Assembly: GCF_001194135.2 (NCBI RefSeq)
Contig: NC_068984.1
Coordinates: forward strand, 104,436,343-104,500,342
Direction of reading: 5' to 3'
DNA from: Octopus bimaculoides
Lineage: Eukaryota
DNA length: 64,000 bases
Positions 6,884 through 62,718 of this stretch are shown here, in pieces. Within the stretch, counting starts at the first letter, position 1; each line of letters opens with the position of its first letter. A model generated the notes under the pieces. The model was given only the letters and a program-made list of their open reading frames with translations, made no database searches and was not told where the DNA came from. The translations under genes were made by a program, and so were the position numbers.

Positions 6884-7911
6884 TCATCATCATCATCATC
6901 ATCGTTTAACGTCCGCTTTCCATGCTAGCATGGGTTGGACGATTTGACTGAGGACTGGTGAAACCGGATGGCAACACCAGGCTCCAGTCTGATTTGGCAG
7001 AGTTTCTACAGCTGGATGCCCTTCCTAACGCCAACCACTCAGAGAGTGTAGTGGGTGCTTTTACGTGTCACCCGCACGAAAACGGCCACGCTCGAAATGG
7101 TGTCTTTTATGTGCCACCCGCACAAGCCAGTCCAGGGGCACTGGCAACGATCTCGCTCGAAAATCCTACAGGAGCCAGTCAGGCGGTACTGGCAACGGCC
7201 ACGCTCAAAATGGTGCATCTCATGTGCCACCCACACAAGAACCAGTCCNNNNNNNNNNNNNNNNNNNNNNNNNNNNNNNNNNNNNNNNNNNNNNNNNNNN
7301 NNNNNNNNNNNNNNNNNNNNNNNNNNNNNNNNNNNNNNNNNNNNNNNNNNNNNNNNNNNNNNNNNNNNNNNNNNNNNNNNNNNNNNNNNNNNNNNNNNNN
7401 NNNNNNNNNNNNNNNNNNNNNNNNNNNNNNNNNNNNNNNNNNNNNNNNNNNNNNNNNNNNNNNNNNNNNNNNNNNNNNNNNNNNNNNNNNNNNNNNNNNN
7501 NNNNNNNNNNNNNNNNNNNNNNNNNNNNNNNNNNNNNNNNNNNNNNNNNNNACTGATGCTTCTAATGTTCAGCTTTTCTCTCAAGATACTTACACTCTGA
7601 CGGGTATTCACATTGACATTACACATCCAACGGAGCATACTGGCTTCATTCCTTGCGAGCTTACGTATGTCCTCAGCAGTTACAGCCCATGTTTCACTGC
7701 CATGTAGCATGGTTGTTCGTACGCATGCGTCATACAGTCTGCCTTTTACTCTGAGTGAGAGTCCCTTTGTTGCCAGCAGGGGTAAGAGCTCTCTAAACTT
7801 TGCCCAGGCTATTCTTATTCTAGCAGCTACACTTTCAGCGCACCCACCCCCACTACTAACTTGGTCGCCCAGATAGCGGAAGCTATCGACTACCTCTAGT
7901 TTTTCATGCAT
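6884..7911 (-). mobile_element. 5'-truncated RTE LINE with 3' UTR and (GAT)n tail
   Basis: EKLEVVDSFRYLGDQ...RIRIAWAKFRELLPLL...MLHGSETWAVT RT C-terminal motifs; 3' UTR ends gttaaacgatgatgatg; N gap 7249-7551. Confidence 0.85.
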
Positions 7912-7989
7912 ATATATATATAATCACATACATACATATATACATATATATATATTGTAGTGTATGCAGGTTGAAGGCTATTGTACGTT

Positions 7990-10870
7990 TATGAGTTCTG
8001 CCAAATGCGAACTTTCTTTTCAGGTACATGACACTGCTGTCCCCCATCCCAGGGTCTCACGGGCCGACACCTACCACACCCTCAGAGCTGGCACACTGAA
8101 ACATAGGTCTAGTGAGATTGTTGAGATGCTTGAATGGAGACGTGTAGATTTGTGCTCCATCCAAGAAATAAGGTAGAAAGGAAGTTCTGCTAGGTTCCTC
8201 ACAGGCAAAGAACATAGGTATAAGATTTTCTGGGCATGGAACACTGACGGGGGGTCGGGGTGTCAGTATACTTCTTGTGGAGAAATGGGTTGATAAGGTA
8301 ATCGAGGTAGTCACAGTCTGTTATAGAATACTTAAGATTAGATTAGTGCTGCATCATGGGTTGGCAACCATTATCTTGGCTTATACCCCTCAGCCAGGGC
8401 TACCTGATGAATAGAAAGACTTATTTTATGACACCCTCTTGCAGACTACCTCATCAACGAATGACAGAGACCTCTTTGTGGCTGGCAACTTCAATGGGCA
8501 TGTTGGACAACATGCATGGGGCTTCCATGGCATACATAGAAGCTATGGTTTTAGTTCCTGCAATGAGGGGAGAACCAGGCTGCTAGAGTTCTGTGATGCA
8601 AATGATCTTATGAGTTGTAACACTAACTTCAGGAAACCTGCCAGTCAATTATTTACCTACTGATCTGGTGGACACACTAGTAAAATTGATTACATCCTCG
8701 CCAGGAAACAGGAAAGATGGCTACTTATAAATGCTAAAACCTTCCCAGGTGAAGAATGCACCCCACAACATAGATTAGTAGTTAGCGATTTCAGGATCAG
8801 GGCTAAATGGATGCCCAGAAGACGACCAGTATGGAGAAAAATGATCTGGAAGCTTAAGGATCCTGCAAATGGACAGAGATTTAGAGACGTATTACCTGAA
8901 GCTTTTGACGAAATAGAGGGGGATATAGCATTACATGATGTGGAAGACAATTGTAGGTTCCTATGGGACAACCTATTAAGGATTACTGACCAGATCTGTG
9001 GATGGTGCAAAGTCCCCTCTTAACCCAATGTAACGTAGTGGTGGAACAATGTAGTTGACAGGGCCATTAAGGAAAAGAAACAGACTTGGAAGGACTGGAA
9101 GAAGGGTGGTAACAGGGAATTGCATCAGATTGCCAGAAGGGAAGCTAGGAGACAGGTTTATTTAGCTTGAGGGGAAGCAGATAAGAAAACATTTACCAAA
9201 GACTTGAAGTGTTTCATGCTGCAAGACAGTGTGTGAGAGAGAATTGTGACGTCATAGGAGAGAAATGTGTCCATATGGATGATGGCTCACTTGCATTTAA
9301 TGAGGCTGCAAAGAGACAGACTTGGAGACGCCACTATGAAAGGTTGCTAAATGAAGAGAATGAATGGGAGAAAAAGAGTCTGCTGAATGTTGACCCAACA
9401 GAAGGACCAGCTATCTGAATTGACAGTACCTTGGTAGATAAAGCAATTAAGGGTATGAAGACAGGGAAAGCCCCCAGCCCATCAGGAATCACTGCAGAGA
9501 TGCTTAAAATATCTGGCGGTGTCGGCTATAGTCTAGTCACCCGTATAGTTAATCAGGTGATACATGGAGTCATACTCAATGACTGGTGTAGCAGCACCAT
9601 AATCAATTGCTACAAAGGTAAAGGTGATGCATTAGATATGAGTAATTACAGAGGTATCAAGTTGTTGGATCAGGTAATGAAAGTCACGGAGAGGGTCATA
9701 GCCCAACTAATTAGGGAGAGAGTCAATTTAGATGAGATGCAGTTTGGATTTGTGCAAGGGAAAGCACCACTGATGCTATATTTCTGGTAAGACAGCCGCA
9801 GGAGAAATACCTAGCCAAAGAAAAACCTCTGTACCCGGCTTTCGTAGACATGGAGAAAGCCTTTGACAAGGTCCCCTGATCCCTTATCTGGTGGTCAATG
9901 CAGAAACTAGGGATAGATGAGTGGGTAGCGAGAGCTGTACAAGCCATGTACAGGGATGCTGTCAGTAAGGTGAGGGTTGGCAATGAGTATACTGAAGAAT
10001 TCCGGGTAGGGGTAGGGGTTCACCAAGGATCAGTCCTCAGACCCCTCTTATTCATCATAGTCCTCCAGGCAATAACAAAGGAATTTAAGACATGATGCCC
10101 CTGGGAGCTTCTCTATGCTGATGACTTTGCTCTAATAGCTGAGTCACTATAAGAACTAGAGGAGAAGTTTCAGGTGTGGAAGCAAGGTCTAGAATCGAAG
10201 AGCAGACAATTTACAAATCCCTTCAAGTAGATGGCCTTGCTTGATCTATAGAAAAGGCGTAGGAAGAAACTCCATAAGATGTACCCGGTGTATGGACACA
10301 TAAGAAGTGCAGCAATATCAAAGGAAGGCTAACTGGGAGGATAGTTTTTGTGTGTGGCAAATAAACACTGAAAATATGCAGAAAACAGCTTGTCAGGAGG
10401 AAAAACTAGAAGTAGTTGATAGCTTCCATTACCTAGGTGACCAAGTCATTAGTGGAGGTGGATGCTCTGAGAGTATAGCTGCTAGAATAAGAAATAGTCT
10501 GGACAATTTTCAGAAAGCTCCTACCTCTGCTGGTGACAAAGGGCCTCTCAGTCAGAGTAAAAGGTTGACTATATGATGCATGTGTGCGAACAGCCATGCT
10601 ACATGGCAGTGAAACATGGGCTGTGATTGCTGAGGACATGCATAAGCTTGCAAGGAATGAAGCTAGTATGCTCTGCTGGATGTGTAATGTCAGTGTGCGT
10701 ACACGACAGAGGGTAAGCACCCTGAGAGAAAAGTTAGACCTAAGAAGCATCAGATGTGGTGTGCAAGAGTGATGACTGCGCTGGTATGGTCATGTGTTGT
10801 GTATGGATGAGGACAGCTGTGTGCAAAAGTGTCACACTCTAGGAGTAGAGAGAACCCGTGGAAGAGATAG
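7990..10870 (+). mobile_element. Degenerate RTE LINE (APE + RT), stops and frameshifts
   Basis: VDLCSIQEIR; GKAPSPSGITAEMLK; NYRGIKLLDQVMKV; FVDMEKAFDKVP; GVHQGSVLRPLLF; LYADD; MLHGSETWAV. Confidence 0.9.
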
Positions 10871-14420: not shown

Positions 14421-15097
14421 ATAACATGCGACGAGAACAGCTGGAGGTGAAACTCTTGACAAAAAACAATTAGGTGGCATACCCAAGGTTTATAAAAATA
14501 CACATCTACCATTCAATTACCAGTTCATAATTATCGCAGCAGTTGCAAGGTTGCAAAGTATTTACAATTTGCCTATATTTGGTTAATTTACACTGCATAC
14601 AAAATAACAGATATACTATGTACACTGCTTACAAAAAGAGATTAATGTGTATTTTTTTCTATGTTCATAATTTTTTGTTTACAATATCGAAAAAAAATAT
14701 GCCACCAAAGAAAAAAACATTATCTCTCCAGAAACATTTATCAAGCAAGGAGGATTACAGAAAACCAAAGGTGAGAGATAAGGGTCATGAGACATTCTCA
14801 AGATCTGCAAAGGCATGCTGCAGCACATCAGATGGAGTCTCAAAAGAGAAGGGAGATGAAACTTTCCCACAATCAGCAAAAGCATGCTGCAGCATGTTGG
14901 ATGGAGTCTCAAGAGAGAAGGGAGATGAGACTTTCCCAAGATCAGCAAAAGCATACTGCAGCGCTTAATGCTGAATCATTAAAACAACATTTAGCATGCC
15001 AGATTACACAGAGGTCCGATAGAATAACTCTCAAAAACAGAGCACGTACAAATTCGTTCTTCACAACTCCTGGAACTGCTTTCAGATATGAGCCATC

Positions 15098-15585
15098 CCA
15101 TCATCATCATTTAGCGTCCGTTTTTCATGCTGGCATGGGTCGGACAGTTTGACTGAGGTCTGGAAAGCCAGTGGCTGCACCAGGCCTCAATCTGATCTGG
15201 CAATGTTTTTACAACTGGATGCCCTTCCTAACACCGGCCACTCTGAGAGTGTAGTGGCATGTCAGTCAGTCAGGTGGCCCTGGCATCAATCATGATTGAA
15301 TAGTGCTTTTTACGTGCCACTGGCATGGGAGCCAGTCATGGGGCACTGGCATTGGCCACATTCAGATGGTGCTTTTTATGTGCCACCGGCATGGGAGCCA
15401 GTCAGGGGGCACTGGCATTGGCCATGTTTGGATGGAGCTTTTTATGTGCCACCAACACAGGAGCCTGTCAGGCGAACCTGGCATCAACCACGTTCGGATG
15501 GTGCTATTTATGTGCCACCAGCATGGGAGCCAGTCAGGGGGCACTAGCATTGATCACGTTCAGATCGACCATGTTCAGATTGATC
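15098..15585 (-). mobile_element. RTE 3'-end fragment with 66-bp tandem repeat x~4
   Basis: Same 3' UTR as 6884-7250; unit starts at 15303, 15369, 15435, 15501; interrupts the Helitron reading frame. Confidence 0.8.
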
Positions 15586-17439: not shown

Positions 17440-17775
17440 AAGTGTTGGGCCTTCCATTTGAGTGTTGGGCCTCATGGAGGCAATGACCGAGACCTTTGGC
17501 ATTATGTTGTGCTTGAGAAGAAGATCCATCAAGCTAAGGAAAATCATAGTCATGGCAGATACTGGTGTCATGCAAATGGCACCCATGCCGGTGGCACGTA
17601 AAAGCAACCTTTACATTCTCAGAGTGGCTGGCATTAGGAAGGGCATCCAGCCATAGAAAACCATGCCAAATCAGACTGGAGTCTGGTGCAGCCTTCCAGC
17701 TTGCCATCCCTGGTCAAACCATCCAACCCATGCCAGCATGGACAACAAACATTAAATGATGATGTGATGATGATG
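17440..17775 (+). mobile_element. RTE 3'-end fragment
   Basis: ggcacgtaaaagca...gaagggcatccagc...ccatgccagcatgg...(GAT)n tail. Confidence 0.75.
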
Positions 17776-17781
17776 TATATA

Positions 17782-19477
17782 TTGGGTTGGCAACTAAGTT
17801 TCCGCGGTTTTTAAAAATTTTGGAATTAATTGTATCTTTAAATTTTGGAATCTATTTTTTTTGAGAATTCTATTTTTGAATCATTTTGGAAGCTATTTTT
17901 TTTTTTTCTAGTTAATTTTAGTTAATTTTTGTTTATTTTTAGATCATTAACATGGAATGTCAAGTTAAGAAAAACGAGCATTTTCGACACCTCCTTCTTT
18001 TTGCTTTTAATCAAGGTTCTAAGGCCGCAAAAGCTACTCACGACATTTGTGATGTGTATGGGGAGGGTGCCATAGCTGAAAGAACCGCTCGTGATTGGTA
18101 TGCCAAGTTCAAAAATGAAAATTTTTACCTTAAAGACTCACCTCGTTCTGATCGTCCAGTTGAGTTCGATGAAGAGGAATTAAACCAACTTTTGTACGAA
18201 AATTCTTGTCAAACAACAAGAGAAAATAGAATGCTCCCACACTGATATGGAGAAGCATCTTCACTTGATGGGAAAGGTTCAGAAGTATGGAGCATGGGTT
18301 CCGCATGCTTTAAGTGACAACAACAAAAATCAACAATTCACAATCTTCGCTGGTTTGCTTGCTTGTCACCACTCAACTCATGGACACAAGCAACAATTTC
18401 TTTACCGAATCATTACTGGCGATGAAAAATGGTGCCTATACATCAAAATGAAGCAGCATAAGGAATGGTTTAACCCCGGTAAACAAGCAACACCGCGCAT
18501 GAAATAAGATCTTCATCCATGTAAAACGATGTTGTGTGTATGGTGGGACTGGGAAGGGATTATCCATTACGAATTGCTTGAACAGAACCAAACGGTCAAT
18601 GCGGAACTCTATGTGCAACAGATGGAACGACTCAACATGGCTATTCAAGAGAAAAGATCTAATCATCAGCACAGAGTTCTTCTGCTGCATGACAACGCCC
18701 GCCCTCATATCACCAATATGACCAAGGGAGGCATTCAAACGCATGGCTGGGAAGTACTGCCACACCCACCGTACTCTCCTGATTTGGCACCAACGAATTT
18801 TCCACCTCTTTTGATCTCTTTCAAATGCTATGCGTGGAGTTTCGTTTATAGGAAAGTTGGTTATACATCATTAGATGTGTACCTGACTTTCCTATATAAA
18901 ATAAATGAATATAACGGAACGCTGAACTCCAGACTATCAACTTATACAACATTTATTCAGGTGGTAAATATATACATCTTTAGCTCTTGTTGTTACAACT
19001 TCTGTGTGTGTGAGCATAGTTGTTGGGACGTTGTTACGTAGATGTAAGCGAGCTGTCGAGCGTAAGTTCGAAAGATGAAGAGAGACAGCTAAACACGTAA
19101 AGAGACTGTCTCCAGAGTTGGAATGTTGGAGACACTGCTTGACACGTCCATGCTCATGGCCGGCCGACCGAGAAAGAGATAGAATAGAAGCGGGAACGTT
19201 TGCTTGTTTTATTCCATGCATGCATGAGACTACGCATGCGCACGGCGTTACTACACGTTCAATACTGATGCAAAATTGAGAGCTTGGTTGGATCAATTTT
19301 TCTAGTCGAAATCGGGTGATTTCTACCAACGAGGTATTGAAAATCTTGTTGAACATTGGAAAGAAGTTGTAAACAACAAGGGTGAATACATTATTGATTA
19401 ATTAGTTGTTATTTTTTATTAAACCTTTAAAAAAATTTTAATTTAAAAAAACGACAGGAATTTAGTTGCCAACCCAA
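17782..19477 (+). mobile_element. Mariner DNA transposon, near full length, pseudogenised transposase
   Basis: TIRs TTGGGTTGGCAACTAA at both ends with TA TSD; HFRHLLLF, WYAKF, WVPHAL, RIITGDEKWCLY, LHDNARPH, HPPYSPDLAP; C-terminus resumes after 19260 (...NNKGEYIID*). Confidence 0.95.
18847..19255 (-). mobile_element. Probable solo LTR inserted in the mariner transposase
   Basis: 409-bp insert flanked by 4-bp direct repeat CGTT (18843-46, 19256-59); minus-strand termini TGTAG...CTATA (one mismatch from TG...CA inverted ends); internal AATAAA; removing it restores the transposase frame. Confidence 0.7.
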
Positions 19478-22454: not shown

Positions 22455-22651
22455 CCATCATCATCATCATCATCTAACGTCTGCTTTTCATGTTGGCATG
22501 GATTGGATGGTTTGACAGGAGCTGACAAGGCTGGGGGGGGGGGTTATACCAGACTCCATTATCTGTTCTGGCATGGTTTCTATAGCTGGATGCCCTTCCT
22601 AATGCCAACCACTTCTCAGAGTGTAATGGGTAATTTTTATGTGCCACCATC
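22455..22651 (-). mobile_element. RTE 3'-end fragment
   Basis: (CAT)n then ctaacgtctgcttttcatgttggcatgg...ggatgcccttcctaatgccaacc. Confidence 0.75.
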
Positions 22652-23131
22652 AGTGCTTTTTATGTGGTACCAGCACCAGTGCTTTTTATGTGGTACCAGC
22701 ACCAGTGCTGTTAATGTGGTACCAGCACCAGTGCTTTTAATGTGGTACCAGCACCAGTGCTTTTAATGTGGTACCACCATCAGTGCTTTTTATGTGGTAC
22801 CAGCACCAGTGCTTGTTATGTGGTACCAGCACCAGTGCTTTTTATGTGGTACCAGCACCAGTGCTGTTAATGTGGTACCAGCACCAGTGCTTTTAATGTG
22901 GTACCAGCACCAGTGCTTTTAATGTGGTACCAGCACCAGTNNNNNNNNNNAGTGCTTTTTATGTGGTACCAGCACCAGTGCTTTTTATGTGGTACCAGCA
23001 CCAGTGCTTTTTATGTGGTACCAGCACCAGTGCTTTTTATGTGGTACCAGCACCAGTGCTTTTTATGTGGTACCACCATCAGTGGTTGTTATGTGGTACC
23101 AGTACCAGTGCTTTTTATGTGGTACCAGCAC
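22652..23131. repeat. 26-bp minisatellite x~18 grown from the RTE 3' UTR
   Basis: agtgctttttatgtggtaccagcacc units; 10-N gap at 22941-50. Confidence 0.9.
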
Positions 23132-26677: not shown

Positions 26678-27357
26678 CCAGATTTTTCTACTCATTTATT
26701 CTGAGTTGTCATTAGACTACGGCCATATTGGGGCTCTATCTTCAAGAGTTTTCGTCAATTATTCTGACTTCAGTATTTTGTTAGGTGCTTATTTTATTGC
26801 TCTTGAAAACATAAAAGGTAGAACTGACCTGGGTAGGATTTAAATTCAGTGCATAAAGGTATGTGGTTAAATGTCTCTGATATTTTAGCAATAAAGAAAT
26901 AATTTTATCACAATACCTGGATGGTCTCTTTCTGTTCATTATTTCCTGGTGTTAAAGTCAAATCATTTCTTGACAATTCTTTTTCATTTTTTATAGTTTT
27001 ATGTGTAACTGAAAGGAAAAAGAAACAATAATGAAGGAGGAGTTGTATTTTGGTATGAAGTTAAAAATGGTTGATGTAATAAATGTGTAAGCTAAGATAT
27101 CTAAAAGACTAGAATAATAAAAGTTTAAAACTAAGGTGACTATGGTTAAGCCCAGGGATCAACAAATTTCTTATATCATAGATCCCTTCATGAAATCATT
27201 GATAAGTTATTGACCTGCATCAAGTAAATTAAAAAAATAAAATTAATAAATATAATTAATAAAATGTTCTTGATTTATAAGGCAATAATTTCTTCATTCT
27301 TTTGTGTCATTACTGCTTTTTAATAAGGAATATTTAAAAAATTTAATGATAATACTT

Positions 27358-30609: not shown

Positions 30610-31570
30610 TTTTATCTTTTACTTGTTTCAGTCATTAGATTGTGGCCATGCTGGAGCACCACATTGAAGAGTTTTTAGTTAAATGAATTGACCCAAGTAC
30701 TTCTTTTAAAGCCTGGTACTTAAAACTATCAGTATGTTCCAAACCACTCTTGGTGTGTTTACATCCTTATACCTTAGTGGTTTGGCAAAAGAGACCAATA
30801 GGATAACTACTAGGCTTAAAAAACAATAAATACTGCGGTCAATTCATTTGGCTGAAAACTCTTCAAGGTGGTGCCCCAGCATGGCTCAGTCTAATGACTG
30901 AAACAAGTAAAAGCTAAAAGATATTCTTTTATTCTTTTACATGTTTTCCTCATTTGACTGTGGCCATGCTGGAGTATCACCTTAAAAAGCTTTAGTTGAA
31001 GAAATTGACCCTAGGACTTATTCTTTGTAAGCCTTGTACTTATTCTATCAGTCTCTTTTTACTGAAACACTAACTTATCAGTTGTCAAGTGATGGTGAGG
31101 GGGACAAATAAAGACACACACATAAATATACATATATATATATATGGCTGTGTGGTAAGTAGCTGGGCGCAGGAGTGGCTGTGTGATAAGTAGCTTGCTT
31201 ACCAACCACATGAATCTGGGTTCATTCCCACTGCGTGGCACCTTGGGCAAGTGTCTTCTACTATAGCCTTGGGCCGACCAATGCCTTGTGAGTGGATTTG
31301 GTCGATGTAAACTGAAGGAAGTCCGTCGGATATATGTATATATATATATGTGTGTGTATATGTTTGTATGTCTGTGTTTGTCCCCCCCCCCCCNNNNNNN
31401 NNNCATCGCTTGACAACTGATGGTGGTGTGTTTACATCCCCGTAACCTAGCAGTTCGGCAAAAGAGACTGATAGAATAGCATACAAAGAATAAATCCTGA
31501 GGTCGATTTGCTCGACTAAAGGCGGTGCTCCAGCATGGCTGCAGTCAAATGACTGAAACAAGTAAAAGAG
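30610..31570. mobile_element. Cluster of four nested SINE family A pieces in both orientations
   Basis: - 30610-30720, + 30740-30920, - 30925-31130, + 31145-31570 (duplicated head). Confidence 0.75.
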
Positions 31571-31639
31571 TATATATATATATATATATATATAGTTTTA
31601 TATATATATATATATTTATATATATATGTTTTATCCCTA

Positions 31640-31834
31640 GTACTGCCTGACTGGCCTTCGTGTGGGTGACATGTAAAAGCACCCACTACACTCTCTGAGT
31701 GGTTGGCGTTAGGAAGGGCATCCAGCTGTAGAAACTCTGCCAGATCAGATTGGAGCCTGGTGTTGCCATCCGGTTTCACCAGTCCTCAGTCAAATTGTCC
31801 AACCCATGCTAGCATGGAAAGTGGATGTTAAACA

Positions 31835-31869: not shown

Positions 31870-33650
31870 TATAGTTGAAATTTACAGAAAAACAAAAGAC
31901 GAAGACAGGTGTATTAGTTTGATGCTTGGGATGGTGAGAAATTTTTATACATTTCAAGCCTACACTCTTCAAGAGAAAGGAACATGAGGAAATAAACAGA
32001 GAGAGAATAAAAAAAAAAATTGTGGATTTAGCAGGCAATCATGGTGATTGGTTAGAAAAGGTAGTTAGATAGGAAAGCTAGGAAGAAGGGGTGATAATAA
32101 AGTACTGGTGATCTCAAAACGAAGGTGTGCATGTGTGTGTGGATGGGGGCTGGTGACTTTAACGTGTGGATGAGTGTGTGTGGAAGTGCGTGCGTCAGTA
32201 ATGTGTGGGTGTGTGGATGATGGTGCGAGTACTGGTAAGTGGTTAGTGCTAGAGTGCGGAGTAGTATGGGGTGGTGTGATGTGGTGTGGCAGTGTGGGGA
32301 TGCGGGTTTGGCGTGAGGATGTGGGGGTGAGGATGTGGAGGTGTGGGGGTATGGGTGGATTATGTGGGAGTGTGTGGATAGGGGTATCAATGAAGGGAGA
32401 AAGTGGGTAGGAGTGAAGAGAGGAAGTAAATGTCAGGGCACGAGAGGAGAGGTGGGTAGGAGTGAAAAGAGGAAGTAGGTGTCAGATGAAGAGAAGAGAG
32501 GAGGGGAGTCAGATGAAAAGGAGAGGAGAGTCGAGCCCATGTGGCGCAAAGGAGCGAAAAGAGAAGATTAATTCCTGTTCATGACAAAGGTGGGAGTCTG
32601 GATAGCTCCTGAGCAAAGACAATCCAAACACAGACAGGTGTTGTAATGAATGACCAGTAGAGCGGAAATGGCATGAAACTGGGGCGTCATTGCCAAGTCT
32701 AACGTCTCGGAGGTGCTCTGCGAACCAGTCAGCCAAGTGGCACCCCGTTTGACCGATGTACAGAAAAGGGCAGAAAGAGCAGGAGATGCAGTAAATGACG
32801 TTGCTATAAGTGCAGGTAAAGGAGTCAATGATATGACAGGGATGATGACAGGTGTCTGTGAGAATAGTGGTGTTGGAGAGGTAGGGGCAAGTGCAGCAGT
32901 ATGGGTGGGAGCAGGGTAACGAGCCAGGTTTGGAGGTGGGGTAGGGAAGAAACAGTGGACCAGGAGGTCATGTAGGTTGTGGGCTCATTTGAAGGAGGGA
33001 AGGGGTAGGTTGAGGAAGATGTGCAAAGTGGAGGAGTCGGATTGGAGTCACCGGAAGGCTCAGGGAATGGTGTCTTGGAGGGGCAGGGTGAAGGAGTGGT
33101 AGGTGAGGGGAAACGGGAGATGGGCAACAGCGGAACAGGTGTGAGGAGAGAGAGCAGAGGCATGGTCCATGGAATGTGCTCTGGCATATCCACGAAGGAT
33201 GAAGTAGCAAACCATGAGTTCAGACTGAGTCTCAAAGTCATGGAGAGCTTGGTGTGGGTAGGGTGGGAGGAGGAGAAGTTGAGGTATGAGTGTGAGTTGG
33301 AGTGTTTATAGTGGATGGAGGTAGTGAGATCAGAGTTGTGTATGTTGACCGATATGTCGAGAAAGGTGATGGAAGTGTTGGAAATGGTGCAGGAGAATTC
33401 GAGGGCAGGATGAAAGGATTGGACAAAAGAGAGGAAGGAGTCTAGTTGTTTGTGAGAGACCAAGGTAGCACGAATACAGTCATCAATATAACAACCGTAT
33501 AGTGAGAATTTACAAAAAAAAAAAAAAAAGACGAAGATGGGTGTGTAAACAACAAACAGATATATTAGTTTAACGCTCGGGAAGTGAGAAAGTCTTTTAC
33601 ATTTCAAGCTTATGCTCTTCGAAGGAAAGGAACATGGGACTAGTGAATCT
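31870..33650 (-). mobile_element. Penelope-like element (RT C-terminus + GIY-YIG) bracketed by direct terminal repeats
   Basis: YIDDCI...FVQSFHPALEFS...ITFLDISV...HYKHSNSHSYLNFSSSHP; NVIYCISC..LYIGQTG..LADWFAEH; ~140-bp direct repeats 31870-32010 and 33510-33650. Confidence 0.85.
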
Positions 33651-35139: not shown

Positions 35140-36280
35140 GATTGTGTGTCCTTGAAGAACTACATAGTCAAGTTCAATAAGAAATTATATAGGAACGTCC
35201 AAGAAGCAGTTGTTGGTGCCAGTGTAGCTCGGGATGTGGCTGGCCTTTTCATGACCTGGTGGGACAAAAAAACATAGGCAATCCCTAGATGAATACTCTG
35301 TAGCTGTAATACTATACTGTAGATATGTAGGTAATATTAACATTATTGTTAGGACAATTCCAGGTAGTGATACTAAGGAAGCTGAGAGGAATACAATGGA
35401 AAACGTCCAGTGCATAGCTAACTCCATCCACCAGAGTATCAAGGTAATGATAGACTACCCCTCTAAGGACACTAACAATAGACTCCCTGTCCGTGATACT
35501 GAAGTTTCGTTAGAGACTACAAACTACAAGGTTCAACTCCTCCCCTTATTTATATGAAATCCATAACTTCAAAATATGTTATTCATAAGAACTCAGCTTT
35601 ATCACACAATGATAAGATAAACATACTTATAGCAGATTTAGTTAGGATAATGAATAACTTATGCCCTGTGTGCAAACCTTGTGAAATAAAAGAGACATGC
35701 ACAGGACTTAATGTACCACATTCAGTCCTCTAGCTACAGCCAAAGTGTACAGTGGAGTAGGAAGAAGTTAGATGACATTATAAGAAAGGAAACCAGTGGA
35801 ACGTTGCTTCGATATTGAGGCAAATAATGTAAAAGAATAAAAAGAATTAGTGATAAAGCAAACAGAATAAATACATGGTACAACAAAGATATTTCAAGGG
35901 ATAATGTTTGTAGATGCTATGCTACATGGGGAGTTATCCCTAGGTTTAGGAAGATTATGAAGGAAGTTAAACTCAATATTGAAGTTGTAGAAAAACCAGG
36001 GTGGTCCATCAGATTACAATTATGTAAGATATACTCCTTTGCAAAGAGCACATATCCTGATAGGAACTGCATTGTGTGTATTTTCAGCCCTAGTATTAAC
36101 TGTAAGACCAGGAATGTAGTCTACTGTATAAAATGCATGGAGGATGATGGTATGAACTGGAATAAGGCATATTTTGGGGAGATTTCTAGGAGTTTAGCTG
36201 AGAGGCTAAATGAACACTGGCAGGAGTATAATGACAGGATACTCTACCAACATGTCAAAGATCAACAAACACACACTGAC
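35140..36280 (+). mobile_element. Penelope-like element (decayed RT + GIY-YIG)
   Basis: KNYIVKFNKKLY...VAGLFMTWWDK; CKTRNVVYCIKC...YFGEISRSLAERLNEH. Confidence 0.8.
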
Positions 36281-36740
36281 CATTTTTGCACTCTCTTGCC
36301 TTCAAAAACCACATTCTCTATCTCTCTCTGTCTGCCAGTCAGTTATTTTTTGGCCATATAACAACATATGTGCTTTTCTCTGGACTATTTGCTCCTCTCT
36401 CCTTTACCTCTTCTCTGGACCTTTCCTTTTATCCGGCAAAGTGCCATGCTCGAAATGCCATTTCTACTCTTATTTTTCCATCTAAAACTTTCACTGAGCA
36501 TTTATCTAATATACTCACTGTGTATGTCCAACTGACTTTTGTTATTTTTCCTGTTTTTTTGTTCATGAATTTGCCTACACACACACACAGATATACACAC
36601 ACACCTTAAAGACGTCTAATGAAATATTTATAAGAAAATAACAGGCAATATAAGAACAATTTGAACAAAAGAATTCCATGTTATGGATTGAATATTGTGT
36701 TAACTTTGATATAAAAATAAATAAAACTGAAAATATTTAC

Positions 36741-38717
36741 TGATATATTCATATTCTGTATCATTGACTGTTTCATTATCACCAAAGGATTCTTCTTTTC
36801 TATTTGGAAACCCCTCATTTTTATCTACTTTTATTTCTCTTGATGCTTTCATTCTCTTGATATCCTCATAGTCATCTTCAGTAACATAACTGTATGTTTC
36901 CTCAGGGGCAGTATTTAGTGAATCTAGAGCTGTGTATACTGGTTCTTTATTTTGGACACTTCTTATACTAGCATATAGTGGTTCGCTTCCTATTTTTGTC
37001 CAGTTACTATCATCATGTATTTTTTCATCTTTAATATTTAGAACATCCTCATATACTTCATTCGTATTATCAGGTGGTACTGTAGGCTGAATGCTTAAGA
37101 TATCCTCGTACACTTTATTCATATTATCAGGTGGTACTGTAGGCTGAATGCTTAAGATATCCTCATACACTTTATTCATATCATCAGGTGTTACTGTAGG
37201 CTGAGTGTTTAAGACATCGTCATATACTTCATTCATAATAGCAGGTGTTACTTTAGGTTGATTGTTTAAGATATCGTCATATATTTCATTCATATTAGCA
37301 GGTGTTACTTTAGGCTGAGTGTTTAAGACATCATCATATACTGGTGTTATATCTACATCTGTTGACTTAGTGTTAAAGAATGCCAGTTCAGTATCAGATT
37401 TTTGTGTTAAAATATCATGAGATATTTTAGTGTCAGACTCATTTCTTGTTCCAATGCTGGCATGGGCTACTCCAACATTTGTCTTTCTTATGAAGTTCTC
37501 AGACATTCTGCTATCACTATCAGAGGTTCCAAGGGATATTTTAGTGTCAAACTCATTTCTTGTTCCAATGCTGGAATGGGCTACTCCAACATTTGTCTTT
37601 CTTATGAAGTTCTCAGACATTCTGCTATCACTATCAGAGGTTCCAAGGGATATTTTAGTGTCAGACTCATTTCTTGTTCCAATGCTGGCATGGGCTACTC
37701 CAACATTTGTCTTTGTTATGAAGTTCTCAGACATTCTGTTATCACTATCAGAGGTTCCAAGCNNNNNNNNNNNNNNNNNNNNNNNNNNNNNNNNNNNNNN
37801 NNNNNNNNNNNNNNNNNNNNNNNNNNNNNNNNNNNNNNNNNNNNNNNNNNNNNNNNNNNNNNNNNNNNNNNNNNNNNNNNNNNNNNNNNNNNNNNNNNNN
37901 NNNNNNNNNNNNNNNNNNNNNNNNNNNNNNNNNNNNNNNNNNNNNNNNNNNNNNNNNNNNNNNNNNNNNNNNNNNNNNNNNNNNNNNNNNNNNNNNNNNN
38001 NNNNNNNNNNNNNNNNNNNNNNNNNNNNNNNNNNNNNAGATATTTTAGTGTCAGACTCATTTCTTGTTCCAATGCTGGCATGGGCTACTCCAACATTTGT
38101 CTTTGTTATGAAGTTCTCAGACATTCTGTTATCACTATCAGAGGTTCCAAGCGATATTTTAGTGTCAGACTCATTTCTTGTTCTAATGCTGGAATGGGCT
38201 ACTCCAACATTTGTCTTTCTTATGAAGTTCTCAGACATTCTGCTATCACTATCAGAGGTTCCAAGGGATATTTTAGTGTCAAACTCATTTCTTGTTCCAA
38301 TGCTGGAAGGGGCTACTCCAACATCTGTTTTTGTTATGAAGTTCTCAGACATTCTGCTATCACTATNNNNNNNNNNGTTCCAAGGGATATTTTAGTGTCA
38401 AACTCATTTCTTGTTCCAATGCTGGAAGGGGCTACTCCAACATCTGTTTTTGTTATGAAGTTCTCAGACATTCTGCTATCACTATCATAGGTTCCAAGGG
38501 ATATTTTAGTGTCAGACTCATTTCTTGTTCCAATGCTGGAATGGGCTACTCCAACATCTGTCTTTGTTATGAAGTTCTCAGACATTCTGCTATCTCTGCC
38601 AGAGATTCCAGGACCCTCTCGTTCATCTATAGTAAAATATTCTGCTTCTGTACTGGAAGAGAGGATTTCAACTCCAGGCATCTTTTTTGCTCCATCAACA
38701 GGCATAAAAACTGGATC
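36741..38717 (-). CDS. Large internal exon of an unidentified gene: Ser/Thr-rich 38-aa repeats followed by a multi-tyrosine (SH2-ligand-like) region
   Basis: Acceptor ttttttag|GAT at 38717 (phase 0); donor |GTAAAT after 36741 (phase 1); stop-free on each side of two N gaps; non-repeat part reads as natural protein; opposite-strand ORFs are mirror artefacts. Confidence 0.85.
37040..37345 (-). repeat. Coding 57-bp (19-aa) tandem repeat x6, one Y[DE]D[VI] per unit
   Basis: Tyr codons at 37336, 37279, 37222, 37165, 37108, 37051. Confidence 0.9.
37420..38594 (-). repeat. Coding 114-bp (38-aa) tandem repeat, 8 visible units plus gaps
   Basis: DSRMSENFITKTNVGVAHSSIGTRNESDTKISLGTSDS; N gaps 37763-38037 and 38367-38376. 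Confidence 0.9.
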
Positions 38718-44420: not shown

Positions 44421-44436
44421 TATATATATCATGCAG

Positions 44437-44688
44437 GTGGCACATAAAATACACCATTTTGAGCATGGCCGTTGCCAGTACCGCCTGACTGGCCTTCGTG
44501 CCGGTGGCACATAAAAGCACCCACTACACTCTCAGAGTGGTTGGCATTAGGAAGGGCATCCAGCTGTAGAAACTCTGCCAAATTAGATTGGAGCCTGGCG
44601 TAGCCATCTGGTTCGCCAGTCCTCAGTCAAATCGTCCAACCCATGCCAGCATGGAAAGCGGACGTTAAACGATGATGATGATGATGAT
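44437..44688 (+). mobile_element. RTE 3'-end fragment
   Basis: Slightly more than one unit of the 66-bp repeat, then the 3' UTR and (GAT)n tail. Confidence 0.8.
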
Positions 44689-48199: not shown

Positions 48200-50000
48200 T
48201 TGGGGTTTGACTACCTTCTATGTACATTTCCTATTTAGTACTGGGGATATTTCATTTATGAGGATGCACTCCTGTATTTGTCTGAGTGTTGGGTCCTCCG
48301 GGTACTTGGATAAAATGCAGATCTCAAGTTGACCCAGTGTGCCTCCATGCTGGTCTTTGGCATGTTGGCAGAGTATGGAGGACTGTTTCTTGTCGTCATA
48401 TTGTCTCAAATGTTCATTTAGTTTCTCCACAATGCTTCTAGATGTCTCCACCCATGTATATTATGTACTCATCTTTACAAGCACCCTCTATGCACCTTAT
48501 GCAGTAGACTACATTTTTACTTCTACAGTTAATGCCAGGGTTAATCTTACATATCATGCAGTTGTCATTGGTGCATATGATATTCTCAAAGGAGTACATC
48601 CTACATAGTTGTGGTCTGATAGAACTACCTGGCTTTTCAACGATCTTAAAGTTGAGTGTGGCCTCCTTCAGATCTTTCTTAAATCTTTGGGTTAGTTCTC
48701 CATAGGGCTGTGGCCTCCACAAACATCATGCCTTGATATTTGTTGGTCTTGTATCACGTGTTCATCCTGTTTGCGTTGTCACAAAATCTCTGTATCATAT
48801 TCCAGTCTTTACTTCTATATCTAGGGCAGGTAAACTTTACCATGTGATTCTTCAAGGTGGTTCTTATGCTAGCCCCTATTGCATGCGCAATCATTTTTTT
48901 CACCTGACTGTTGTTCTCAGGGCCCTGGATGGGTATGGTCCAGCCACTCCAGTGCTCTGTGGTGCTTTTCTTCACTGCCAAGGTGATGGTGGTTGGTCTT
49001 CCCCTCTGTGACCTGGTGGGGCAGAATCTACTAATGTCATGGTTGTCTAGGTAGTTATAGTCATAGCTTAGTTTAAGGAGGTCCAGTTCCCTCATGTTGA
49101 CTTCATGGAACTCTACTTCACTCTCACTGATAATCTCAATGTATTTTTCCACAGTAAAATCTATCTATAGATTGGTAGAGTGAAACTACATCCATACTAC
49201 CCACTAGACAACATGTGAGGTCGTTGGAGTAGTTGCAACTACTGATTCTACTGAGAAGCTCACACAGACATCTGGGGACATTTCAATGAGTGGTTGTAAC
49301 TATAATTGCAGCAGATATTTACTTTATAAACTGACCAGGAGGCTCCATAACAGGGTTTATGTAGGGTTTATGGTCCTTACATAACCCATATAGTGTAAGA
49401 ACATCGTTGTTGAATGCTTGAAAATTTTGTGCAATCCATTTCTTGGGTTGGAGTATATTGTACTACATTCCTATGTGTGCATTGAGGAGTTTTTCCACTC
49501 TTTCATGTTCTTGTGGTGCAACTTCTCTCATGCTACTGATGTGTTGTTGCATGGTCTGGACATAGTTCTGTGGGTTGTTTATCAACAGTTTGCCAGACCT
49601 GTCCATAGGGAGGCACACTAATTCCCTGTTTCAGTTTTTGTAGGCAACAGATGAACTGAGTTGGTGGATCTCGCCCTGATTATAATTTTTAGTGGTTTTG
49701 TTGTACCAGTCTAAGATGTGTCGGAGTGTATTTCTAGCTAAGGAAATCTTTGCCTCTGTCTCACTGTCAATCTGTGGTGGGATATGTACCCTTTTGTTGA
49801 AGGGTAAGTCTGTGGGGTAGATCCTCATCATGTCGTATGATTTGTTGTTGGGGTTATAGAAGACAGAGTGTAGGGTGCTATTGGTGTTACTATTGTTGTG
49901 GTTGTTGTTGTTATGGTTGCTGGCATTGTTGTTGCTGGTGGTAGTGGTAGTGCTTGTGTTGTGTTCATTGTTGATAATATTTTTATTTGATATCCTCAAA
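48200..50000 (-). mobile_element. Penelope-like element with internal RT deletion
   Basis: LPMDRSGKL N-terminal motif; VVSLYQSID RT motif; CRSKNVVYCIRC...ETSRSIVEKLNEH...PTLRQIQE GIY-YIG; same family as 35140-36280. Confidence 0.8.
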
Positions 50001-59649: not shown

Positions 59650-61810
59650 CATACTGGATGCGGAAGTACATATGTCAGGCTTTGTTCTACTCAGAACTGA
59701 CTACAGAATATGGAAACGAGGAGAAATAGCAATCTTTATCCAAGAAGTCGGCATACCTGCAGCTGCATGTGGCTGAGAAACTGTGGAAATATCAGCTGGT
59801 AAGGTATAAGGAACGGACATACTGACTGACCAGGTTGAGATTCAGGCTGAATTCAGCACCGAAGATTATGGCAACAATTCTCAAAAGCATCCTGGGAAAG
59901 GCTGACAAAGTGAAAAGCGCCACAACTTCCTATATTAACAACATCCTGGTGGATGAGAGCATAGTGTTGGCAAAGGAGTCATAAGCCACTTGAAGAGTTT
60001 TGGGCTAACTGCTAAACCGCTGGAGGCAATGGAAAGAGGAGCTGCACTGGGACTCAAGCTACAGAGAGATAAGGCCAGTGCATTGGTGTTTTGGAAAGGG
60101 AATGAGATCCCAGAACTGGGCTCCAAGACAAGTAGGTGAGAACTGTTTTCTGTGTGTGGGAAGCTGCTGGGACACTACCCGATTGCAGGATGGCTCCGGA
60201 TGGCATGCAGCTTCATTAAGAGGCGAGCTGAAGGAGTGAGGTGGAGTGACAATGTGGGCAAGAAGACAACTGCCATGATGCAAGAAGTCTTGGAGAGAGT
60301 GACTGCGGAGGACCCAGTAAAAGGAAACTGGTATGTGCCCAAACTGAAGAATGGGATCATGTGGTGTGATGCCAGCAGCATAGCAATGGGAATTGTCCTG
60401 GAAATTGGAGGTGTTGTGGTGGAGGATGTGGCCTGGCTCAGGAAGAAGGATGAGTGCAACCACATCAATGTGGTGGAGCTGGATGCCATGTTGAAGGGAC
60501 TGAACCTGGCCCTGAGGTGGGGGCTGTGTACCATCGAGATCCGGACTGATTCAGCCACTGTACTTAGAGGGGTGGGATCAGTGGTCACTGGCGAGCAGAA
60601 GGTGCAAACCAAAGAGGGCGCAAAGATGCTAATAAAACTCCGTTTGGGAATTCTGGGCGAGCTAGCTGCTGAGTTTGACCTGAGGCTGAGTGTGGTTTTT
60701 GTGCTCTCTGAGAGGAATAAAGTGGACGTCCTGACCAGAGTAAAGAAAGCCTGGTTGCAGGTGCCAGAAGATCTGGAGCAAGGAGTGGCTGCAGTGTGTT
60801 GACTGAGTGACTCGGAGCTGAGAAGATTACATACCATGCATCACATGGGGGTGGACAGGACCCTGTTCCTAGCCAGGAAAGTTGACTCTGATATGACCAG
60901 GCAGAGTGTGCAAAGAGTAGTTGGGAGCTGCAACAAGTGCCAGTCCATTGACCCTGCTCCAGGTGTGCATGAGGCAGGAAGCATTCCAGTGGANNNNNNN
61001 NNNGTCCATTGACCCTGCTCCAGGTGTGCATGAGGCAGGAAGCATTCCAGTGGAACACAACTGGAAATGACTGGCAGTGGACATGACGCACTACCGGCAG
61101 GGGACATACCTCTTGATGGTTGACTGCAGACTGGGGTGGTTGGCCATATGGAGGGAGATGAAGACGAGGACCACGGAGGAAATCACAAGAATATTAAATG
61201 AGATATTCCTAGAATGAGGCCTCATGTAGGAGCTACTTGTGGGCAATGGCACTGCATTTCGCTTGAAAGTGCTGGGGGAAATTCTCAGCAAATGGCATGT
61301 TTGCTGTTTCTTTAGGGCAGCATACTGGCCAAGTGGCAATGGGGTTGTGGAGACGCATCATCGCAGGGGACACATCTCACCCGTTTGAGGCTGTTTTTTG
61401 ACCAGGTTGAGACAGGCTGAGGAGTCAGTGCCACACAAGGCAATATTCAAGTATGAGTGGAGACATCCACATACCACATTGCTGTAACCTGCAGAAGAGA
61501 AAGAGCATGCCTTTGTACAGGTTGGGGAAGAAGTCTAGGTTAACCCACCAAATGCATGGTGCACATCACAATGGAGAAAGGGGGACAATAACCTTTGTAA
61601 ATTTGAGGAACAATGTGTCTACAGATGGCATGCCACATCATGTTTTGGATGTGCACAGGATCATCACTGTGATGGAGCATGGAGCTATCAGTAATGGATA
61701 AGAGGATAAAGCCGGCAGCAACATGCCAGGAACTGAGGCCAGTCCTGAAGTCCCACGGTGGTTGCAGATGGAGCAGTGCTCTCCTCACTGGTTGGCTGAT
61801 TATGCGATAA
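59650..61810 (+). mobile_element. Gypsy LTR retrotransposon pol fragment (RT-RNase H-integrase), decayed
   Basis: YLQLHV...LTRLRFRLNSAPKIM...YINNILVDE; WCDASSIAMG...HINVVELDA...IRTDS; HHMGVDRT...CNKC; LAVDMTHY. Confidence 0.85.
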
Positions 61811-62213: not shown

Positions 62214-62601
62214 TTAAACAGATTGGTTAATGACAGATAGTAAAGAGCAGAACTAAAACACAGTATTTAGCTTTGTCCCTCTTTCTTCTGACAAAATATC
62301 CTGTCAAGATTAACTTAAAGTTTTCTGTAATTTATAAAATCCTTTTCTTAACAAGTAAGTAAAGCTTTGTCTTAACATACTTTACAAGTTTCTTGAACAT
62401 CTTTTATATGTTTATGTATCAACAGCCTAAACAATAACAAGACCAGCAACACTGCTAACAATGACATCAATATCAATAACATACAAGGTTTTGTAGCAAA
62501 TACAGAAAATATAAGAATCTGAGTTGCTGATGGCAGTAACATTTGAGAGGGTAAATAGGGTTTGCAAGAATTACAAAAAAATAATAAATAAATGCTCTTG
62601 C

Positions 62602-62718
62602 CTGTAAACTGCTGGTGATATCATCCAGTAGATTGCTCCCCTGAGACCCCTCTGAAGAATTTAGTCTTAAAGCTGATGGAGAGTGTGTTGTTGGTGTAAA
62701 ACTCATATAACTTTCATA
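62602..62718 (-). CDS. Probable 117-nt exon (phase 0/0) with GC donor, likely upstream exon of the tyrosine-motif gene
   Basis: ttcatttcacag|TAT acceptor; YESYMSFTPTTHSPSALRLNSSEGSQGSNLLDDITSSLQ; CAG|GCAAGA donor followed by T-rich sequence; phase matches acceptor at 38717. Confidence 0.45.

Follow-up and report, generated by a model that had tools for sequence, protein, structure and literature searches.

In a 64,000-nucleotide stretch of the Octopus bimaculoides genome (contig NC_068984.1; this whole stretch is hereafter the window, and all positions are counted within it), the minus strand carries a large coding exon that ends in an array of Tyr motifs, six of which are spaced exactly 19 residues apart. 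The interpretation that we rank highest, with a probability of roughly 40%, is that these motifs would form a phosphorylation-dependent docking array for SH2 domains, carried by a probably dimeric scaffold protein. At 36741-37345, the minus strand translates without a stop into 200 amino acids, 13 of which are Tyr (6.5%), together with 43 acidic and only 17 basic residues (net charge of -26) and 16 Pro. The segment opens with six [VI]Y[DE]D[VI]L cores (YDDV, YDDI, YDDV, YEDI, YEDI, and YEDV), whose [VI] codons start at 37341, 37284, 37227, 37170, 37113, and 37056 (57 nt apart), and these are followed by YASI, YTAL, YSYV, YEDI, and YEYI. Tandem Repeats Finder (TRF) detects the repeat at 37045-37342 with a period of 57 bp (5.2 copies, 88% matches, no indels), and the consensus of the 19-residue unit is [VI]-Y-[DE]-D-[VI]-L-[NS]-x-Q-P-x-V-x-P-x-x-x-N-[EK]. 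A first-pass annotation, made from the letters of the DNA without database searches, had already described this array; its list of motifs and its 19-residue spacing proved exact upon minus-strand translation. It had further described the array as coding, acidic, Pro-containing, and probably disordered, with neither a domain nor a transmembrane helix in the exon, and here too the analysis agreed. Pfam returned no match for the exon, and the highest 19-residue Kyte-Doolittle mean of the 200-residue segment is -0.15, so that a transmembrane helix is absent. The exon is predicted to be disordered, as AlphaFold2 (AF2) gave it almost no secondary structure and predicted local distance difference test (pLDDT) scores below 50 throughout, with a mean of 33.5 for the array, although the underlying alignment was as shallow as that of the C-terminal half of the protein.

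Since the six repeat motifs are copies of a single unit, they were counted once rather than as independent events, and the motif statistics were therefore obtained from a non-redundant sequence of 143 residues consisting of the linker that precedes the array, one unit, and the tail that follows it. In this sequence, I/L/V occupies the +3 position of six of the eight Tyr (P=2e-4, shuffles), and the five Yxx[ILV] motifs of the unique tail are also enriched when the tail is taken alone (P=9e-4, shuffles). The residues flanking Tyr are 41% acidic, as opposed to 21% overall, and V/I/L is found at -1 in 8 of the 13 Tyr. By pattern matching only, Y[DE][DE][IVL] occurs at seven sites and Y[AST]x[IVLM] at three, while a regular expression search of the array for YxxM and YxN motifs found none. 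The aromatic position is Tyr, never Phe or Trp, in all motif copies from four species. One more Tyr motif, EAEYFTI, lies in the unique N-terminal part of the exon, but it is not conserved, as its Tyr is replaced by His in a related species. Tryptic peptides of the exon would include VYEDILSIQPTVPPDNMNK and IGSEPLYASIR.

Src-family kinases favor I/L/V at -1 and a bulky hydrophobic residue at +3 (PMC5889215), and on account of their aliphatic -1, acidic flanks, and hydrophobic +3, both the [VI]-Y-[DE]-D-[VI]-L units and the five unique Yxx[ILV] motifs would suit a tyrosine kinase of the Src-family type. Once phosphorylated, pY[DE]D[VI] motifs would be expected to bind SH2 domains of the Src-family or Nck type. 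The pY[AST]x[ILV] motifs may instead bind a Csk-like SH2 domain, as YASI, YTAL, and YSYV resemble Csk-type ligands, and the YASI-x9-YTAL pair could recruit a tandem-SH2 kinase of the Syk/Shark type. The closest precedent for the repeated motifs is ADAP (FYB1), which carries the identical tetrapeptides YDDV and YDDI in an acidic context, with, as we assume, Val at -1. That these tetrapeptides are SH2 ligands, which the first-pass annotation had stated for pYDDV, has been demonstrated in ADAP, where the sites are phosphorylated by Fyn and the phospho-YDDV and phospho-YDDI peptides pull down SLP-76, Nck1/2, PLCgamma, p85, Crk, Gads, and RasGAP (PMC2908683). It should be noted that ADAP differs from the octopus protein in having three such sites, no tandem duplication, and hSH3 domains, that the two share no sequence homology, and that SLP-76 is a vertebrate immune adaptor. 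The helical C-terminal part of the octopus protein probably pairs two chains as a coiled coil, and one molecule would therefore offer at least 20 docking sites, enough for multivalent clustering like that of nephrin, Nck, and N-WASP, which needs three phosphotyrosine sites (PMC4238058). Gain or loss of 57-bp units would in turn shift the valency between species.

The first-pass annotation had assigned the array to an unrecognised protein, which was incorrect, since the exon is 100% identical to the O. bimaculoides RefSeq protein XP_014790227.1 over 38717-38376, 38364-38038, and 37761-36742 (N gaps interrupt it at 38367-38376 and 37763-38037), and the O. sinensis and O. vulgaris annotations include it as well. 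The gene is thus annotated already, but unstudied, and a literature search found no mention of it. Its RefSeq models in O. bimaculoides are XP_014790227-30 and XP_052823298, all with the N-terminus cut short. Orthologues are O. sinensis LOC115210688 (isoforms X1-X3), O. vulgaris CAI9721300.1 (a 1319-aa 'hypothetical predicted protein' from a gene spanning 218 kb), and a 251-aa open reading frame (ORF) on L001, a 1.3-kb Logan genomic contig of the related species mentioned above. The gene is single-copy, with one locus found per species. The array exon is an open minus-strand frame from its acceptor at 38717 down to its donor at 36741, its final base, and the 200-residue segment takes up its 3' third. 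Upstream, it is separated from the preceding coding exon by an intron of ~23.9 kb, which is of the GC-AG type and starts with GCAAGA (62581-62586, minus strand), and the resulting SSLQ/DPVF junction is present in XP_014790227.1. Downstream, an intron of ~9.7 kb leads to the exon at which the helical C-terminal half begins. Sensitive tblastn revealed no further exons of the gene within the window; those encoding the ankyrin repeats and the large C-terminal exon are located beyond it. Three independent annotations contain the array exon and no model skips it, which suggests, though indirectly, that the exon is transcribed; the O. vulgaris annotation merged Iso-Seq, RNA-seq, protein alignments, and ab initio models (PMC10700109). 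The automatic names of the gene conflict (UACA, dentin sialophosphoprotein-like, TRIP11-like, and uncharacterized) and are unreliable. We also considered the exon as an unannotated orphan or single-exon gene starting from the ATG at 38705, which the identical RefSeq proteins rule out, and as a transposon ORF, which is ruled out because both flanks are collinear with the orthologous contig and there is one locus per species. The O. vulgaris annotation seems to split the gene, as the ankyrin part forms a model of its own, CAI9721297.1 (122 aa), named 'ankyrin repeat domain-containing 24-like'. In addition, the first exon of CAI9721300.1 (MLADKLRNICSKFLG...) is unlike the first exon of the O. sinensis models.

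The first-pass annotation had proposed assembling the full transcript and searching it for domains; in the full-length protein models, a domain search was fruitful for the N-terminus. The O. sinensis models open with ~215 aa of ankyrin repeats, followed in order by a Ser/Thr-rich stretch, the repeat-bearing exon, and ~540 helical residues. In the 1469-aa O. sinensis protein XP_036358121.1, Pfam matched Ank_2 (6.1e-40) and Ank (4.3e-33) over residues ~56-215 and no families other than ankyrin ones, while the O. vulgaris protein and its parts gave no Pfam match at all. Neither a signal peptide nor a transmembrane helix was found in the full-length models of three species, and in the O. vulgaris protein (1319 aa) the 19-residue hydropathy peaks at 0.51. 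Given this absence together with the ankyrin start and the helical end, the protein is soluble and located inside the cell. The first-pass annotation had entertained the tail of a receptor and, as a circumstance that would speak against its own reading, an extracellular region subject to Tyr sulfation; both placements have to be given up, since the array is intracellular and lies between N-terminal ankyrin repeats and a long helical C-terminus. For the C-terminal ~540 residues, AF2 modeled six helices of 12-91 residues between disordered linkers (mean pLDDT 53, with 65-90 in the helices), and this part is probably of the coiled-coil type. A search of PDB sequences with the C-terminal 110 aa gave only chance matches, and a GRIP-like identity of the last 40 residues, which their look had suggested, was dropped for want of support from Pfam or the PDB search. 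The ankyrin part retrieved only generic ankyrin and designed ankyrin repeat protein (DARPin) matches from the PDB, which are no test of orthology. Between these two ends, the middle of the protein is a long acidic stretch built largely from two in-frame minisatellites, one of 38 aa in 1-13 copies and the other of 19 aa in 3-6 copies.

As the first-pass annotation had supposed, the array is specific to one lineage and owes its valency to tandem duplication of 57 bp. An exhaustive HMMER profile search of 1.84 billion representative proteins detected homologues of the exon in only two 50%-identity clusters, both of them from Octopus only and one of them being CAI9721300.1. Word-indexed protein searches missed even the 100%-identical XP_014790227.1 as well as CAI9721300.1, and an empty result from such searches does not equate to absence. 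The number of 19-aa units is 3 in the L001 species, 4 in O. vulgaris, 4-6 in O. sinensis, and 6 in O. bimaculoides. Among the O. sinensis isoforms, XP_029635229.1, XP_036358121.1, and XP_036358122.1 have 6, 5, and 4 units and lengths of 1488, 1469, and 1450 aa, respectively, which suggests a copy-number difference between transcripts and assembly, a polymorphism, or alignment slippage, rather than splicing. The Tyr residues and the motif core are retained across orthologues; the first-pass annotation had named non-conserved Tyr positions as an observation that would refute it. The window retains every one of the 12 Tyr present in the L001 orthologue (P=0.017 in a neutral simulation), and no stop codon arose between the two (P=0.054). 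Within the 18-nt core of the window units there are five variable sites, all of which are synonymous, V/I, or D/E changes (P ~0.01-0.02). A comparison of 11 distinct units, drawn from four species, shows no change at Y, D(+2), L(+4), Q(+7), and P(+8), while the spacers vary. In the tail, 63 of the 98 residues are invariant across three lineages, and its best conserved block is GS[ED]PLYASIRSVQ[ND]K[EK]P[VA]YTA[LI]DSLNTA. The linker HDILTQKSDTELAFFNTKSTDVDITP is the same in O. bimaculoides, O. sinensis, and O. vulgaris.

A more ambitious extension of the docking interpretation, which the sequence features permit but which we regard as rather doubtful, is that Octopus possesses a phosphotyrosine hub of its own. 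In such a hub, a minisatellite-built array of Src substrates and SH2 ligands, together with a pair of motifs spaced as in an immunoreceptor tyrosine-based activation motif (ITAM), would have been inserted into a cytoskeletal ankyrin/coiled-coil scaffold, and the 57-bp copy number (3, 4, or 6) would set a valency that differs between species. It may possibly differ between individuals as well, because X1-X3 of O. sinensis are separated by steps of exactly one unit.

A number of observations weigh against SH2 docking. All of the statistical tests are small and partly post hoc, and six of the seven Tyr columns in the tail are invariant, which is not significantly more than for the other columns (P=0.21). 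The ITAM pattern is normally found in chains anchored in the membrane, whereas the octopus protein is soluble and its resemblance is a pattern match only. The motifs are also compatible with two other short-motif classes: the regular expression [EDST].{0,2}[WFY][^RKPG][^PG][ILMV], which describes LC3-interacting regions or Atg8-interacting motifs (LIR/AIM), matches nearly all of them in three sequences, with the exception of the units preceded by NMNKV, and 12 of 12 motifs match the Y..[LMVIF] pattern of YxxPhi sorting signals. In comparison with the L001 species, the exon and its intron flanks have a similar nucleotide identity of ~85-87%, the 99 substitutions are spread almost evenly over codon positions (35:33:31), the amino acid identity of 72% equals the neutral expectation (73%), and the ratio of nonsynonymous to synonymous substitution rates (dN/dS), which comes from this one species pair, is 0.56-0.74. 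Weak constraint and neutrality are not distinguished by the dN/dS and codon-position tests; taken together, the exon shows hardly any constraint and is near-neutral. The free variation in unit number could likewise mean lax constraint.

These same evolutionary data provide the main support for what is, in our estimation, an unlikely explanation but the best surviving of the alternatives, namely that the motifs have no specific function and are the by-product of minisatellite expansion in a disordered, rapidly evolving stretch that separates the ankyrin part from the coiled-coil part and of which only the length, the charge, and the open frame matter. The wide variation in copy number between close species (1-13 and 3-6 for the two repeats) fits this explanation, as does the difference between the tail or exon, which is 85% identical between O. 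bimaculoides and O. vulgaris, and the C-terminal half, which is 92% identical. Against the L001/L002 species, the corresponding values are 69-73% for the exon and 88-89% for the C-terminal half. What a mere by-product accounts for less readily is that Tyr and the core are kept beyond the neutral expectation, that Yxx[ILV] is enriched in the unique tail just as in the non-redundant sequence, that the frame remains open and each repeat period is divisible by 3, and that the ITAM-spaced block is the best conserved part of the exon.

Considerably less probable is that the motifs are LIR/AIM motifs, which would bind Atg8/GABARAP proteins without phosphorylation and make the protein a multivalent autophagy receptor or adaptor, or else a vesicle tether. 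LIRs have the core [W/F/Y]-x-x-[L/I/V], in which the aromatic residue is preferably preceded by acidic residues or Thr (PMC7615515). Besides the regular expression matches, the enrichment of acidic flanks around Tyr agrees with this consensus. Autophagy receptors commonly combine a long coiled coil with a number of LIRs in a disordered region. However, the aromatic is Tyr in every copy and never Trp or Phe, and the V/I/L found at -1 in 8 of 13 cases suits Src-type kinases (PMC5889215) better than LIRs, in which an acidic residue, Ser, or Thr is usual at that position. In addition, the invariant L(+4)..Q-P extension lies outside the LIR consensus, and Pfam detected no other autophagy-related domains. 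We consider it very improbable that the motifs are YxxPhi signals for the mu subunits of clathrin adaptors, even though all 12 match, since it is in the cytosolic tails of membrane cargo that such signals function and the octopus protein has no transmembrane segment; the same low estimate applies to Tyr 'stickers' that drive condensation without phosphorylation, as the Tyr are evenly spaced in a disordered chain but a net charge of -26 over 200 aa disfavors self-association via few aromatics. Finally, a transmembrane receptor with the array as its cytoplasmic tail, or sulfation of the Tyr in an extracellular region, can practically be discarded, as the likeness to the motifs of nephrin and the intimin receptor Tir is all that speaks for it and the hydropathy of the full-length models, the cytosolic ankyrin repeats at the start, and the long helices at the end all speak against it.

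Among known proteins, the overall build is most similar to that of UACA, RAI14 (ankycorbin), and ANKRD24, which have N-terminal ankyrin repeats followed by a long coiled coil; in the octopus protein, ankyrin repeats at the very N-terminus precede a disordered linker and then hundreds of helical residues, and this is a likeness of build. Some of the automatic RefSeq/ENA names also point to this group ('uveal autoantigen with coiled-coil domains and ankyrin repeats' and 'ankyrin repeat domain-containing 24-like'), and a putative orthology is supported by these names only. Unlike the UACA group, the octopus protein has a repeat-built insert of ~660 aa that includes the Tyr array and whose relatives were detected only in Octopus. 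The array itself is comparable to nephrin, LAT, and p130Cas, in which several Tyr motifs similarly lie in a disordered cytosolic chain and valency governs clustering with SH2/SH3 adaptors (PMC4238058). In contrast to the octopus protein, nephrin and LAT reside in the membrane, and p130Cas contains an SH3 part and a Src-binding part, whereas the octopus array is located between ankyrin repeats and a coiled coil, consists in part of a recent exact 57-bp repeat, and would be phosphorylated only putatively. The substrate domain of p130Cas is itself a run of repeated Tyr motifs. In the cytosolic scaffolds BCAP, BANK1, and Drosophila Dof (Stumps), ankyrin repeats occur together with a coiled coil and numerous docking motifs based on Tyr. 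These scaffolds are defined by the DBB domain, which Pfam did not find in the 1469-aa O. sinensis protein, and their Tyr motifs are mostly YxxM or YxN; the octopus protein has neither. As for the ITAMs of Draper and the Fc receptor gamma chain, EPLYASI-x9-YTAL fits the pattern [DE]xxYxx[LI]x6-12Yxx[LI] and is conserved in all orthologues: the window, the L001 species, and O. vulgaris match at the same place (P=0.006 when tails are shuffled, post hoc). Judged by sequence, LIR/AIM motifs share with the octopus motifs the core [W/F/Y]xx[L/I/V] and preceding acidic residues, but the octopus motifs use Tyr only, mostly with an aliphatic -1. Dentin sialophosphoprotein, the RefSeq name of isoform X2, was rejected as a relative, since that protein is secreted, with a signal peptide and long tracts of Ser-Asp repeats, and in the octopus protein there is no signal peptide and just one SDSDS per 38-aa unit, and the name reflects composition rather than kinship.

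Multivalent Tyr-motif scaffolds and ankyrin/coiled-coil proteins are already known kinds. The new element here is a genus-restricted, tandem-repeat-built, number-variable Tyr array between an ankyrin and a coiled-coil part. If the array is phosphorylated, it would provide a clear natural case in which tandem duplications of a short linear motif have created signaling valency and adjusted it, all within a few million years, in a genus for which good genomes exist. A cephalopod gene with an ankyrin/coiled-coil build, so far unstudied, would thereby also gain a first function; the vertebrate genes that share its names act at the cell cortex and the cytoskeleton. Without phosphorylation, the array would be an ordinary fast-evolving disordered linker with unstable in-frame repeats. 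The exons of the gene in the window and the parts of the array exon are listed in Table 1.

Table 1. Coding exons of the array gene in the window and segments of the array exon (a slash marks the splice boundary).
Feature	Positions	Strand	Boundaries or composition	Source
Upstream coding exon, YESYMSFTPTTHSPSALRLNSSEGSQGSNLLDDITSSLQ	62587..62718	-	acceptor cacag/TAT, donor CAG/GCAAGA	tblastn of O. vulgaris CAI9721300.1
Large coding exon with Tyr array, ~2 kb	36741..38717	-	acceptor ttttttttag/GAT, phase 0; donor ATCA/GTAAAT, phase 1	
Unique N-terminal exon part, DPVFMPVDGAKKMPGVEILSSSTEAEYFTIDEREGPGISGRD	38611..38717	-	~36 aa	
114-bp (38-aa) in-frame tandem repeat	37421..38610	-	period 114, 3.0 + 5.0 copies, 91-97% matches	TRF
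Unique linker, HDILTQKSDTELAFFNTKSTDVDITP	37343..37420	-	26 aa	
57-bp (19-aa) tandem array	37039..37342	-	five full units and the core of a sixth	TRF, unit table
Unique acidic tail	36741..37038	-	98 aa with YASI, YTAL, YSYV, YEDI, YEYI	
ITAM-spaced block, EPLYASIRSVQNKEPVYTAL	36925..36984	-	two Yxx[IL] motifs 9 residues apart	
Downstream coding exon, (I)THKTIKNEKELSRNDLTLTPGNNEQKETIQ	26917..27009	-	acceptor cctttcag/TT, donor CAG/GTATTG	tblastn, RefSeq models

The 38-aa repeat of the exon has the consensus LGTSDSDSRMSENFI[TR]KT[ND]VGVAH[SA]SIGTRNE[SF]DTKIS, and eight of its copies are readable in the window, around the two N gaps. There is a single copy in the L001 species, as opposed to 10-13 in the O. 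sinensis and O. vulgaris models (10-11 by regular expression count), and the copies are more alike within than between species, i.e. they exhibit concerted evolution. Each 38-aa unit has one SDSDS patch, and these patches probably underlie the RefSeq name 'dentin sialophosphoprotein-like'. On the plus strand, two long ORFs (357 and 321 aa) run over the 114-bp repeat at 37411-38490. They exist because the 114-bp unit is stop-free in those frames, and since the single-copy L001 orthologue has no such ORF, we rejected them as genes and consider them by-products of the repeat unit.

The window as a whole has a G+C content of 37% and includes many N gaps, microsatellites, and transposon remnants. 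A remnant of a mariner/Mos1-type transposase with several broken frames lies in an intron at 17943-19038 on the plus strand (HTH_48, E=8e-21; Transposase_1, E=2e-19), and the 23.9-kb intron includes a fragment of a retroelement pol gene at 60140-60799 on the plus strand (DUF7047, E=3e-21; RNase H; RVT_3), with further open frames to ~62200. Reverse-transcriptase-like open frames are also present at 7552-10800, where the pieces tested had no Pfam match. Three related open frames at 35828-36358 (plus), 48221-48725 (minus), and 32512-32967 (minus) share the pattern 'NVVYCI.C ... Y.GE..R.L..R..EH', and one such frame lies ~400 bp downstream of the array exon. The pattern looks like that of a GIY-YIG nuclease of Penelope-like retroelements; Pfam returned nothing significant for these frames. 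Lastly, a short interspersed repeat is present in at least six copies and in both orientations, at 6952-7248, 15092-15292, and 17550-17756 on the plus strand and at 22477-22659, 31519-31785, and 44432-44626 on the minus strand, and in one frame it translates to '...LQSDLAEFLQLDALPNANHSESVVGAF...'.

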